DNA of 64,000 nt from positions 1,488,001-1,552,000 of the forward strand of contig CAJFCJ010000012.1 of NCBI GenBank assembly GCA_904063045.1. Reading direction: 5' to 3'. Under the pieces are notes generated by a model, which was not told the DNA's origin, searched no databases, and was given only the letters and a program-made list of their open reading frames with translations. Origin of the DNA: Dimorphilus gyrociliatus. Lineage: Eukaryota > Animalia > Annelida. Position 1 is the stretch's first letter. Each line of letters opens with the position of its first letter. Position numbers and translations under genes: made by a program. Below are positions 41,580-47,942 of the stretch, one piece after another.

Positions 41580-42614
41580 TCAGTGGTTTGCCAAGTTTCT
41601 TAGCCGAGAATTTATACCTCTGCAACGGCACAGTAAAATCTCTTTAAATGGCTGTCTAAACTCCGTGTTAAATCGGGCATAGATTATGGGGTTGAGGAAA
41701 GAATTAGCGTAGCCGAGCCATTGGAAGAACGAAATCGCCCCTTTTGGAATACATTGCCTGCATAGGGGGTCGATTAGGGCAAGTATAAAAAATGGGAGCC
41801 AACAGGCTGTAAAGCCTCCCATAATGACGCCCAATGTTACAATAGCTTTCCCTTCCCTATTCGATACATGACCTGACTTGCTCTTCTTCGACGATTTACT
41901 ACCGCCGCCACTGCCGTTGGCGGCCGACGGCTCCTGAAGGGGAATTTCGATGTTATTTAATTGCGGTTGGGAGCGCTTCTCTCTTTTAGCTATCCTCGAA
42001 CTGACGGTGTAAATCCGATAATAGATAAATATCATAACGCCCAAGGGCAAGTAAAAGGCGAAAATTGTTGCGTAAAACTGATATCCAATGTCCTGTGTAA
42101 TGATACAATGTCCTTCTGGAGGTTCTGTTTTCCAGCCGAAAACCGGCGGAATGGAAACGATGGCGGAAATGAGCCAGACGGCTAGGATCATTAAGCCCAT
42201 TCTTGTGGGCGTCCTCTTGAGCGCGTAGTCGAACGGTCGAGTGATAACCAGGTATCGGTCGATACTTATGCAGCATAAGTTGAGAATACTGGCTGAGCAA
42301 AGTAATACATCTAAAGATGTCCAGGCGTCACACATCATTCTACCTAATATCCAATAACTCTCGACTTCGTAGGCCGCAGCATAGGGCATGACGAGTAGGG
42401 CTACGAGAAGATCGGATACGGCCAATGAGACGATAAGTAGATTAGAGGGCGATTGAAGTCTACGAACTATACCGACGGCTATGCAGACGAGAGAATTGCC
42501 TATAACCGTTCCGACAGTTAATACGGTTAGGAAGAGACTAATAAAAACTTTTTGCCAAACTTGATATTGTTCGATAGGAGCACTCGTCGCATTCGACGAG
42601 TTACTGACGTTCAT
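41580..42614 (-). CDS. HTR7-like: Intronless biogenic-amine GPCR, 5-HT7-like serotonin receptor
   Basis: GNSLVCIAV, LAVSD, D3.32 in LDVLLCSAS, SIDRY, YQFYATIFAFYLP, CWLPFF, WLGYANSFLNPIIY, FRQPFKEIL. The subtype call is from sequence resemblance only. Confidence 0.85.
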   Translation of the reverse strand: MNVSNSSNATSAPIEQYQVWQKVFISLFLTVLTVGTVIGNSLVCIAVGIVRRLQSPSNLLIVSLAVSDLLVALLVMPYAAAYEVESYWILGRMMCDAWTSLDVLLCSASILNLCCISIDRYLVITRPFDYALKRTPTRMGLMILAVWLISAIVSIPPVFGWKTEPPEGHCIITQDIGYQFYATIFAFYLPLGVMIFIYYRIYTVSSRIAKREKRSQPQLNNIEIPLQEPSAANGSGGGSKSSKKSKSGHVSNREGKAIVTLGVIMGGFTACWLPFFILALIDPLCRQCIPKGAISFFQWLGYANSFLNPIIYARFNTEFRQPFKEILLCRCRGINSRLRNLANH

Positions 42615-43957: not shown

Positions 43958-45166
43958 TCAATTCCACCAGAAGCTAACTGAAAAGCTAATACTAAGCGAT
44001 TTAACGTAATGCCAATATTTAGGTGGAATATAGAGAATGCAACCGTCGGTTAGTATACATTCTTTATAGGGAGTCTGGGTAAATAACGGAAATTCTTCCT
44101 CGTTCACATTTTCGACATCTACTCGTGAAGTATTACACAGCATCCGCTCGACATGAGGATAAAGGGATGAGGATTGACTGCTAGAATATAGGCGAATATA
44201 CTTTGATCCCAACACTTGACAAAGTAGATTATGTTTTGGATCGTGATGTAGAGGAGAGACAGTTCCACTAGGTCCAAACCAAGCGTTTATATCTACATCA
44301 TTATTTTCGCTGTCAGTAATGGAGCAATAGTCAGGGATAAGAATATCATCTTTGAGTTCTGGAACTTGATCGAAAAGTTGATGCTGAGCTAAGTAGCCTA
44401 CGGTTTGACAATCTCCTACGATATACTTGTCAATAAATTCCCCCACGGTCATTAGAGACTGACTCCAATCTTCTTCCGTGTATTTAGAGCCAACTTCTAT
44501 AGGTACTGTTCGTTTTCCAGCGACTTTTTTAATATAGTCAATAGTCCATAACCTATTGGATCTAGCCGGCCACAAATCCATACAATTTTCAATTATTACC
44601 GGTTCACTGAGATCCATAAATTCTCTTTTAAATTTTTCTAATGATGGACAGACCACACGGCGCACGGCCTTCGATGGATCTATAGTTACTGTTGTTTTGC
44701 TCTCGGCAATTACTCTTGGCACTTTAGATGGGGGTTCATCGCTAATTGACCCTTCATTAACTATTAATATTATTTTCGAGAGAATATTATCTAAAATAGG
44801 AACACCCATCAATAAACCCATGTCAAAACTTTTTGTGGCCTGTAAAACTGATTCATCATCAAAATTCCCTAAGGCCAATTTAGAGACGCCCAAAAAAAGT
44901 GAACCGTAAGAAAACAAATATCTCCAACTCATTGACACATTTTTCCAGTGGCCACTGTTTAAATGTTCCCATGTTTTATCTAATAGAATCTCGCTCTTCG
45001 ACACGACAACGCTCCATTCGCCCCGTAAATAGCTTTCAGTTAATATCTCAAGGAGTTCGTATAAAAATGGTCCTAAAACTCTTTTTTCAGTACAATTAAA
45101 ATTAAACGTTCTAATATCAATCGGTAAAATATATTTTAGGCGTTGATTCACGCTGTGAAGATTCAT
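43958..45166 (-). CDS. KDM8: JmjC hydroxylase KDM8/JMJD5, intronless
   Basis: [63 protein letters not shown] (HxD), [16 protein letters not shown]. First in-frame ATG is at 45166. Confidence 0.96.
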
Positions 45167-45220
45167 ATTTTTCAAGCACGATTAAAGAAATCTCTTCGAA
45201 AGCAGGGAAGATACATATAA

Positions 45221-45234: not shown

Positions 45235-45696
45235 ATAAAATTGGAAAAGTGTTTAATCTCCGCAAAAATCTAGACATTTTGGTAAAGCACAAAAACGCAT
45301 TATATAAACGACTAGACGAGAAAAGCAAGGACAAAGTGACAGTTTTATGCTAAATTATTTAGTGTTTTTTTCATAGAGTGATTGAGTACAGAAAAAATAT
45401 TTTCTTTTCCAAACTTTCATACAGTTCTTTTACCGTCATGGGTTTTGAAAACCAGTGAAATTGAGCCTCTAAGGACACTAAAAGCCTCAAACCTTATACG
45501 TTGGCCTTAAAACGTAAAAGTTTTGGCAGAATTTACACTAAAATGGAATGACAAAAGTCAGCACTGGTGATGAGAGATTCGTGCAATTATCCATTACATG
45601 TACACATTACACTTACAAGCACCGTTGAATGCTTCATATTACACAATCATAACAAAAACAGAAAGTAAAAATTAAACGTAAAACGCTGGCGATTGA

Positions 45697-47726
45697 CTAC
45701 GACAAGACTTTATCGATAAATTCCAAAAAACGTTTCGCATATTGTTCAGGTTTGACTGTACTAATTTCGGCATTGGCTCCATGTTTTACAGCTTTGGCCG
45801 CTTGAGCCGTCCTTTTCTTCATGCCGTAATGGGTGAGAATGTCAATTAAAGCCAAAAAATAAATTTCTTTCTTTCCCTCCCCAGCTGCAAAATAATAATA
45901 TCAAATAAATGTATCAATTCATGTGAGATACAACATTTCTCACCGCATTGAATCCCATAAATATCATCTTGAAGGGGATTTTCTACGCTCTCGGAATATT
46001 GAAGTCTTCCTGGAGAAATAGGCGATTCCGGTGGAGTATTTGTATGTGCACCTAAACAATCTTCTTCTGAACTGAAGCATTCATCTTCTCCCTCTTCAGC
46101 CTCGCGTTCCCGAGTTTCCCTCTCTATCTCAGCCTTCTCAATATCATGAATTCCAAGTAACATACTGTAATCCATTAGGTTTTGATCGGTGAGAAACTAT
46201 GAATTAAAAATGCAACATTTATTGAACGTATAAGGCAAAATCTATCTTTATTGATATTACTGTTGTGTCCTTTTTCAAAACTTCCATAATACGTTGTTTG
46301 GCATTTTCGCCAACAATTAATTGTACACCATCATTGACAAAATCGTTATCTTTAAATGTAGGAAGATCTTTACTCTTTTCTTTATCACTTGCTTGTCGAT
46401 CAACTGTCGATCCCTAAAATATTGAACCAGACCATAAATGAGTACACAAATCATTAATTGTAAAAAATAACATTAATTGCACTTTTTTACCTTTAAATCG
46501 TACTTTCTGTGTATCGTCATTCTAGGACTAAATATGTTTCGCATAACTATTAAATACGTTTCAGCATCATTCACAGTTACTCGATACATTCCCATGTATT
46601 GTGGCAGTAAAGTATCAGCGTGCCTTTCGACGATATACTATCAAAATAGAAATTGAAATGAAATTTAAGCATTGAGTAGTATGAACGTAAACCGTAGCCT
46701 GAAAAACCAAGTTCATTAAGCATTACAATCTACCTCGTGATAGGCTTTGATCACATTATGGACTTCCGCCACCTGATATGATTCGATAGTCTTCACTAAA
46801 AACAAACCGTCCCAAGAATTAAAGCGGCGAGTGGCGCCTTTAGCACTGGTCGAACTTTCCAGATCGATCGGAGGCAATTTCGTAAGCGAATTCTGAAGCG
46901 AAAATCGTACGACGCCGTACAGAAATCATAGTTCGAAAATCTTGTAAAGCTTAATGAAACAATTGGCCTAAAAGAGACTACAAAATCGCGCAAAATCACT
47001 CCTTTGCTTGCCTGGTGGTATCCTTTAAGAATGCACAACATTTTGTCGATTTCTTCTGACATAAGGCTTTTGATTACAAATCGTCGATCATATGAAAGAA
47101 AAAAACGAGCTCCGCTCCTACCAGGCGAATCCTTTCCTTGTGGACTGCATGCGGTCAAAGATTTCTGAAAGAAGCTTGTTAATTTGCCGATGAACAACTA
47201 TAATTTGTTGTACGATAGATAAATTTGTCATAGAAAACGGATGTGTGGATGTCTGTTTTATATCGTTTTTTCCTGATTACACTAATCAATAGACTTACTA
47301 GATATTGTTGATCTTCTACATGAAACCTTTCCCTTAAATTTCTAAATACCAGTGGGCAATACTCCTTGAATTTGAAATGGCTTGGCATATTCTCCCTATA
47401 GAAATTGGAGATGTATGTCAATCAAATTATCAATGCGAGATGAGGAACATACTTGTTAAATAAATGATTATCTACGCGAACTTTGCTTGATGCTTTAAAG
47501 TCATCTGGCATAAGCATTACCGGTGGGTTAACATGTGCTAATTCGTTCAACTGAATGCAAAAATCACGGTTATTAGTCATTTAAAAGTTGTCTTGAATAA
47601 AGCGGAACTCACTGAATGATTGATGCCCCACATGAAAACACTAAGCAGCGGTTCCTTAGCCCTAAATAACTTGCGTTTCTGATGAACCGTCTTGATGTGC
47701 TTCTTCTTTGATTCGATCCTCGACAT
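45697..47726 (-). CDS. PIP4K2: Phosphatidylinositol 5-phosphate 4-kinase (type II PIPK), multi-exon, with two alternative homologous exons (47012-47164 and 46734-46892)
   Basis: [96 protein letters not shown]-stop (45697). Confidence 0.95.
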
Positions 47727-47942
47727 TGTGTTTCGTCGATCTCTGATTCCACTTCAAGAGAAAACTAATGCATTTCGACAGAAAAGAGAAAATTATAGAA
47801 ATGCCCAACCAATCCCATAATACATTTCGAAATCCGGACTAGACTGGATCCTCATTCGGATATGTAGATACCAGTTTTTTTTTGCAATTCGAAATATTCA
47901 GCTCTATGGAAACAGCGTCTTCATACTATTATTAGGCCTAGA

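Follow-up and report, generated by a model that had tools for sequence, protein, structure and literature searches.

Two homologous alternative exons encode the nucleotide-binding loop of the PIP4K gene of the annelid Dimorphilus gyrociliatus and flank a conserved intron with a predicted stem

The type II phosphatidylinositol phosphate (PIP) kinase gene (PIP4K) of the annelid Dimorphilus gyrociliatus contains two homologous exons, A and B, each of which encodes the nucleotide-binding G-loop of the kinase. The gene lies on the reverse strand of the stretch of DNA analyzed here (the window), 64,000 nucleotides (nt) of assembly GCA_904063045.1 corresponding to positions 1,488,001–1,552,000 of contig CAJFCJ010000012.1; all coordinates below are those of the window (Table 1). 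Its transcripts comprise two productive mRNAs, distinguished only by which of these exons they contain, and a non-productive form in which exon A, the intron between the two exons, and exon B are all retained. The two encoded proteins of about 400 amino acids (aa) are otherwise identical and differ in a segment of the N-lobe that comprises the G-loop, the strand carrying the ATP-binding lysine, and the following helix. It is quite probable that these are tandem-duplicated alternative exons used one at a time, that the choice between them is guided by an intron stem, and that isoform B is weakly active or under different regulation. A literature search retrieved no report of alternative G-loop exons, or of such an exon pair, in PIP4K. 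Each element, whether a pair of homologous mutually exclusive exons, a GC donor at an alternative exon, or an intron stem, is of a known kind; the functional interest lies in the target.

Exons A and B have the coordinates, lengths, translations, and splice signals given in the original prediction, which was made from the window sequence without database searches, and its proposal that they are homologous phase-0 exons is sustained. Both consist of whole codons (153 and 159 nt), lie 119 nt apart, and are 27% identical to each other. Full-length alignment to human PIP4K2A/B structures gives an expectation value (E) of 1.5e-10 for exon A and 1.1e-6 for exon B. Because both exons match the same PIP4K2 segment end to end, they are homologous and do not merely resemble each other by chance. 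As predicted, both keep the lysine of the (I/V)K motif, which does not vary in the alignment. Exon A, which is ~60% identical to human PIP4K2A, retains the canonical GRSGARF loop, and its helix has drifted. Exon B has an N-terminus and a helix nearer to the vertebrate (alpha/beta) consensus than those of A, and retains the S-W-D (S-x-D) strand together with the ATP-binding lysine. In the loop, GRSGAR of exon A aligns with AKGATR of exon B and with AKSATR of exon B in a related species (see below); exon B has neither glycine of the GxxGAR motif, and in the relative serine takes the place of its sole leftover loop glycine. Exon B had been described as invisible among the open reading frames (ORFs) of the window, which needs correction: most of it appears as a 53-aa ORF (46716–46877) once short ORFs are listed.

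Exon A is bounded by the acceptor ttcag/AAA and the GC donor CAG/gcaagc, and exon B by the acceptor cttcag/AAT and the donor GAG/gtagat (a slash marks the splice boundary). The spliced frame is open with A only (400 or 403 aa) and with B only (402 or 405 aa). Inclusion of both exons also stays in frame (453 aa), as does skipping of both (349 aa), so that frame-based surveillance would be unable to enforce exclusivity. Transcript contigs of the gene span at least 45400 to 47816. In a profile search of the genome contigs (77.9 Mb, 349 contigs), PF01504 matches three loci (C2, C17, and C12, which is this gene). This fits the earlier assumption of a single PIP4K, with C2 and C17 counted by PF01504 only, and invertebrates have been described as having a single PIP4K (PMC6523245). 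A search of all contigs finds exon B once in the genome. The C12 locus matches PF01504 profile positions 10–50, 52–99, and 100–287, with per-exon scores of 40.4 bits for A, 13.7 bits for B, and 53.9 bits for E6. The last exon encodes the activation loop; its only PDB matches under a threshold of 0.01 are PIP4K2A/C/B chains (E 1e-18 to 1e-15), with the alignment IDILTHY..AAK.VKHGA.AEISTV.PEQY.KRF. Against solved structures, exon A matches type II PIP kinase with E 1.5e-10 and type I with only 7e-3. Judging from these matches, the gene is a type II and not a type I PIP kinase.

Evidence on exon use in RNA comes from assembled Logan contigs of four public runs (X1–X4) aligned to 45400–47900, which show presence and not levels. 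Two are metatranscriptomes, one marine (X1, ~99% identity to the window) and one from coral (X2, 100%). X3 and X4 are labeled as two other organisms and reach 95–97% identity; the splicing of their contigs identifies them as RNA. At least three studies and two sequence lineages (99–100% and 95–97% identity to the window) are represented. The joint of B to E6 (46637 to 46734, CT..AC) and that of A to E6 (46637 to 47012, CT..GC, corresponding to the GC donor) are present in all four runs. The joint of E3 to B that skips A (46892 to 47300) is found in X3 and X4, and the joint of E3 to A (47164 to 47299/47300) in X1 and X4. The contigs of the four runs contain neither an A–B joint (46892 to 47012) nor the E3–E6 joint of a double skip, with the proviso that assembled contigs drop rare variants. 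They break exactly at the borders of exons A and B, as expected of branch points in a de Bruijn graph.

The GC donor of exon A, which the original prediction had called weak and non-canonical, is beyond suspicion, since it is used in the RNA of every run. The proposal of mutually exclusive use is upheld in that the upstream-A, upstream-B, A-downstream, and B-downstream junctions are all found, each exon being joined to both neighbors, and in that no A–B junction is seen; the part that calls for absence of A–B joining exceeds what contigs, as opposed to read counts, can prove. Exon B is spliced into RNA through the E3–B and B–E6 joints, and the direct E3–B and A–E6 joints mean that A and B are not always co-included. 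In one respect the prediction was incomplete: X2, X3, and X4 contain a third species that it had not foreseen, an unspliced contig that runs from inside A through the intron into B (46863–47041). The corresponding transcript is shifted in frame and stops inside exon B. Because the other introns are uncovered in X3 and X4, this form is neither DNA nor general pre-mRNA. The contig depths, which are one figure per contig and give no ratios, fit a mixture of three species (A-only, B-only, and A–intron–B).

Two further features of the RNA contigs concern other parts of the gene. A contig of X1 at 47151–47325 is unspliced through the E3–A intron, and none in that run passes unspliced through the A–B intron, the reverse of X2–X4; the X1 contig may reflect DNA carry-over or a different retention pattern. 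At the end of E8, two GT donors lie 9 nt apart (AATGCG/gtgagaaat and, further into the intron, AGAAAT/gttgta), of which the X1 contig uses the end at 45935 and the X2, X3, and X4 contigs the end at 45944. The choice slightly alters an acidic variable insert and gives the longer (403/405 aa) and shorter (400/402 aa) versions of the two isoforms.

Both exons are conserved in a related species. The relative is represented by a 1250-nt genomic Logan contig (L009), found via P0001, the sole database relative of exon B in a word-index protein search; it aligns to 46333–47556 at 86.6% identity. Exons A and B are both present in it, and their splice sites, the GC donor among them, are unchanged. By Nei-Gojobori counts, the proportions of synonymous (pS) and non-synonymous (pN) differences are 0.487 and 0.017 for exon A, 0.436 and 0.017 for E6, and 0.199 and 0.040 for exon B. 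Exon B has seven synonymous and five replacement changes, and all five replacements fall within the loop (LESSTSAKG to METSSNAKS), with the 34 residues after it unchanged. From the pN/pS values and the invariant 34 residues, exon B is a selected coding exon, under purifying selection and with a fast-evolving loop. The possibility raised with the original prediction, that exon B might be degenerate in close relatives, is thus answered by an intact exon under purifying selection.

Searches beyond the relative returned no further exon of B type. An exhaustive search of a representative protein library with exon B gave four hits, none of them B-like (two unrelated long proteins and two short canonical-loop exons from other organisms, P0004 and P0005); as each 50% cluster is represented there by a single protein and ~45 bits are required of a 53-aa query, this result is not evidence of absence. 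The word-index protein search with exon A gave no match within the allowed length range, and scans of metagenomes for peptide patterns of exon B or for 21 nt of the stem arm were likewise empty.

Two sequences from elsewhere illustrate the range of forms of this exon. A metagenomic PIP4K exon (L010:194–346, L011:117–269) reads as a blend of A and B, which suggests that the ancestral residues preserved in A differ from those preserved in B. A genomic Logan contig from a much more divergent organism (L012:834–1419) has the same exon borders, introns of ~95 nt, and a single 159-nt G-loop exon (SGSGRNGARLW) between the equivalents of E3 and E6. The single exon is not used to date the duplication, as kinship of this organism to D. 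gyrociliatus is not established.

The introns around exon B are conserved to an unusual degree. The A–B intron is identical to that of L009 at 115/122 aligned positions (94.3%), compared with 201/293 positions of other intron sequence (Fisher p 2e-9). The differences in the A–B intron are three substitutions and one deletion. The B–E6 intron is 95% identical over its first 42 nt and 49% over the rest, and the E3–A intron is 97% identical (35/36) over its last 36 nt and 66% over the rest; the E2–E3 and E6–E7 introns are 79% and 79.5% identical, respectively. The conserved blocks of the A–B and B–E6 introns are predicted to pair with each other in a stem, S1, which is part of the minimum free energy fold of the whole E3–E6 interval in each species independently and which RNAalifold resolves into 32 bp in five helices. 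The duplex of the whole A–B and B–E6 introns has a predicted energy of -45.4 kcal/mol against -27.7 ± 3.5 for dinucleotide shuffles. Of 13 intron pairs in the gene, this is the single strong outlier relative to shuffles (z -5.0; the next pair has z -2.0). For the core arms, the free energy (dG) is -32.3 against -13.8 ± 2.9 kcal/mol (z -6.4), a value reached by 0 of 1000 shuffles. Both arms are at least 95% conserved, and conservation of the B–E6 intron ends where the complementarity ends. All the interspecies differences in the A–B intron lie in predicted loops. Between the species, one G-U pair becomes A-U, and no pair of the 32-bp consensus is broken. S1 would enclose exon B and both its splice sites and abut the B donor, with the A donor ~27 nt from one arm and the E6 acceptor ~55 nt from the other. 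A weaker prediction is the hairpin S2, which would enclose the exon B acceptor (CAG/AA); both interspecies substitutions in this stretch fall in loops. Since the two sequences are nearly identical and offer no covariation, S1 counts as a predicted and conserved stem, not a proven one.

The conserved end of the E3–A intron contains the branch point and polypyrimidine region of exon A; its pairing with any other block is no better than that of shuffles, and the duplex of the E3–A and A–B introns has z -0.2. A model of competing selectors for one docking site was rejected, there being no second significant pairing. An Rfam scan of the A–B intron gave no family match. A small-RNA identity of this intron was likewise rejected, because there is no Rfam family and because the contig runs into both exons and so is not a processed small RNA. 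Within the 3′ arm of S1, at 46701–46709 (reverse strand) and ~33 nt into the B–E6 intron, is a look-alike of a 3′ splice site (ttggtttttcag/g); no joint at this place is found in the four runs.

Exon choice probably works as follows. When S1 is closed, exon B would be looped out and the region just past its donor covered, and the weak GC donor of exon A would be brought near the E6 acceptor, making the 374-nt A-to-E6 intron effectively short. Introns of D. gyrociliatus are typically short (median 66 bp), and the short ones are spliced with greater efficiency (PMC7854359). An effectively short intron would suit splicing machinery tuned to introns of ~66 bp, and S1 would thereby aid the weak GC donor. 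When S1 is open, the sites of exon B would be usable, so that E3 is joined to B and B to E6, and the weakly defined exon A would be passed over. If A and B are both recognized, the GC donor may not be paired with the B acceptor, in which case the A–B intron would stay and the frame-shifted transcript would be non-productive.

Several observations weigh against the combination of one-at-a-time use, stem-guided choice, and a weakened isoform B. All the RNA data are assembled contigs with no reliable levels, so that A–B joining or double skipping at a low level is possible, and the sides of the junctions are just 26–30 nt long because the contigs break at graph branches. The depth of the A–intron–B contig is of the same order as that of the exon contigs, and use at the RNA level is not cleanly one or the other. 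S1 rests on two nearly identical sequences with 0 double changes of the compensatory kind, and the relative lacks one terminal pair present in the S1 fold of the window. No corresponding stem around exon A has been found, and how A comes to be skipped is conjecture. As for the protein, isoform B keeps the lysine and the S-x-D strand, and full activity with an altered nucleotide preference or regulation is conceivable.

Other explanations of the exon pair and its introns differ in how well they bear these data. The conservation and complementarity of the A–B intron may have nothing to do with control of exon choice and may instead reflect protein-bound splicing silencers or enhancers or an unrecognized small RNA, the stem being incidental. 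Such an origin would account for the lack of covariation in the two available sequences, for the conservation of the entire 119-nt A–B intron and not just its 42-nt arm, for the conserved end of the E3–A intron that lacks a pairing partner, and for the abundance of the A–B intron region in RNA contigs. It is nevertheless less likely than not, since the complementarity is far beyond that of shuffles and unique among the intron pairs of the gene, the conserved part of the B–E6 intron stops with the complementarity, the substitutions and the deletion in the A–B intron sit in predicted loops, and the intron lacks an Rfam match and is carried in an RNA contig running through it into both exons. It is much less probable that exon B is a decaying or noise duplicate, a pseudo-exon that is occasionally spliced in and gives no selected protein. 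Its low PF01504 score, the loss of both G-loop glycines, the difference at 5/9 loop positions between two close species, and the failure to find a B-like exon elsewhere in protein and metagenome searches could be read in this way, but the last 34 codons of B have seven synonymous and no non-synonymous changes, the relative retains intact splice sites for it, and the adjoining intron sequence is strongly conserved. Moreover, its joints to E3 and E6 recur in several runs, with a contig depth of the same order as that of exon A. That both exons are constitutive and the segment is normally doubled in the protein is hardly credible: the 453-aa frame would permit it, but no run has an A–B joint, direct E3–B and A–E6 joints exist, and the only RNA with both exons keeps the intron and is shifted in frame.

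With alternative use of A and B as the preferred reading, the question becomes what the rebuilt loop does to the enzyme. In PI5P4K, the G-loop accounts for activity differences of several orders of magnitude among the alpha, beta, and gamma forms (Clarke and Irvine, 2013; PMC3749867). The glycine-poor, fast-evolving loop of B, together with the drop in its PF01504 score, suggests a low-activity isoform, and either weak activity or a different mode of regulation is plausible for isoform B. This isoform could plausibly also act as a scaffold and dimerize with isoform A, because the dimer surface is shared and the N-terminal VMLMPDD motif, encoded by the constitutive exon E2, is present in both isoforms. 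The related VMLLPDD motif mediates kinase-independent inhibition of PIP5K (PMC6619495), and PI5P4K alpha and gamma form true heterodimers (PMC3749867). The original suggestion of a high-activity isoform beside a low-activity or scaffold one, with mixed dimers, is thus compatible with the sequence. A fuller proposal, that one invertebrate gene gives a catalytic and a near-inactive scaffold isoform via its G-loop exon, in a ratio set by the stem that hides B and with formation of A/B heterodimers, is tentative and on balance somewhat doubtful.

The isoform might, on the other hand, be a fully competent kinase whose loop alters the preference for ATP or GTP, regulation, or localization, in which case the parallel with PIP4K2C would be superficial; we consider this a substantial possibility, if short of an even one. 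The ATP-binding lysine and S-W-D strand are kept, the helix of B is the nearer of the two to the vertebrate alpha/beta consensus, and the remaining catalytic machinery is common to both isoforms; in addition, the Ser/Thr-rich loop could be a phosphorylation site. Sequence is also a poor predictor of activity, as enzymes of Caenorhabditis elegans and Drosophila with an alpha-like consensus differ hugely in activity (PMC3749867). What speaks against full competence is that both motif glycines are replaced, that the sole leftover glycine is not conserved in the relative, and that swaps of the human G-loop alone shift kcat by ~10- to 450-fold (Table 1 of PMC3749867).

The PIP4K exon pair can be set beside several known systems.

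Mutually exclusive homologous exon pairs occur in protein kinases, an example being exons 6a/6b of JNK (MAPK8–10). Like them, the D. gyrociliatus pair stems from tandem duplication of an exon, has copies matched in phase and size class of which one is used at a time, and exchanges a functional piece of the kinase fold. It differs in belonging to a lipid kinase and in exchanging the nucleotide-binding loop and lysine strand in place of a hinge or docking groove. GC-AG introns are linked to alternative splicing, and the CAG/GCAAG donor of exon A fits the consensus at its other positions, is conserved in the relative, and is used in RNA. As in RNA-guided splicing (the docking and selector elements of Dscam1, 14-3-3zeta, and srp; PMC4691838, PMC6071210) and in looping-out stems, complementary conserved intron elements flank the variable exon and would draw a distant donor and acceptor together. 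Unlike the Dscam and srp systems (PMC4691838, PMC6071210), PIP4K has a single predicted stem and no second competing selector, and exclusion of double inclusion seems to rest on the weak GC donor and the non-productive retained intron. In vertebrate PIP4K2A/B/C (PI5P4K alpha/beta/gamma), the same segment varies, a canonical loop accompanies high activity and a divergent one very low activity, and heterodimers form (PMC3749867). Kinase-independent scaffold roles via the N-terminal motif are a further likeness, the corresponding motif of the worm being in a shared exon (PMC6619495). The worm variants arise, however, by exon choice in one gene and not by gene duplication, the B loop is not gamma-like in sequence, and the worm isoforms are known from sequence alone.

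An open question about PIP4K is why animals keep the near-inactive PI5P4K gamma or C. elegans PPK-2, and to what extent the family functions independently of catalysis. The worm isoforms, which differ only in the G-loop exon, are a natural experiment in which a canonical and a non-canonical nucleotide lid have been selected in one gene. Should isoform B be weakly active, it would lend convergent support to a selected scaffold role, and the two isoforms would form a minimal protein pair that separates catalytic from structural functions. If the gene does toggle between a catalytic and a scaffold form, it would represent an independent, splicing-based origin of the division of labor between vertebrate alpha and gamma, and independent evidence for a selected kinase-independent role of a low-activity form. 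The compact locus (~700 nt) is a candidate for exon choice by a looping-out stem and a GC donor in a genome of short introns. Finally, coding exons like B, with its 13.7 bits against the family model, can escape notice when a gene is viewed one exon at a time.

Table 1. Coordinates of the PIP4K gene, its exons, and the conserved or predicted intron elements in the window
Feature	Position	Strand	Remarks
PIP4K (type II PIP kinase) coding span	45697..47726	-	RNA-contig splice joints, open spliced frames, PF01504 matches
E1	47613-47726	-	Start codon at 47726
E2	47453-47550	-	Constitutive; carries VMLMPDD motif
E3	47299-47395	-	Constitutive upstream exon; ends EDQQYL; donor joins A or B
Last 36 nt of E3–A intron	47165..47200	-	97% (35/36) identical to L009; branch point and polypyrimidine region of exon A
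Exon A	47012-47164	-	153 nt; GRSGARF G-loop, lysine strand FVIK, following helix; GC donor
A–B intron	46893..47011	-	119 nt, GC-AG
Stem S1, 5′ arm (predicted)	46942..46983	-	Inside A–B intron
Hairpin S2 (predicted, 17 bp)	46878..46938	-	Encloses exon B acceptor; weaker prediction than S1
Exon B	46734-46892	-	159 nt; rebuilt loop (AK(G/S)ATRRF, S in the relative), lysine strand FLVK, helix
Stem S1, 3′ arm (predicted)	46692..46728	-	+6 to +42 of B–E6 intron, right after exon B donor
B–E6 intron	46638..46733	-	96 nt, GT-AG; joint 46637 to 46734 in 4/4 runs
E6	46491-46637	-	Constitutive downstream exon; starts YIVERHAD; acceptor takes A or B
E7	46261-46413	-	RNA-contig splice joints and reading frame
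E8	45935 or 45944 to 46196	-	Two alternative donor ends
E9	45697-45884	-	Stop at 45697

Directly downstream of the 3′ end of PIP4K, on the same strand, 43958–45175 is one open frame of 405 aa that, judged by eye only, resembles a JmjC/cupin-type hydroxylase. The X3 and X4 transcript contigs have unlike sequence past 45412, and the layout of the 3′ untranslated region and the neighboring gene may vary between lineages. Farther along the reverse strand, 41580–42614 is an intronless open frame of 344 aa with the look of an aminergic-type G protein-coupled receptor (DRY-like IDRY, NPIIY), a candidate by appearance.

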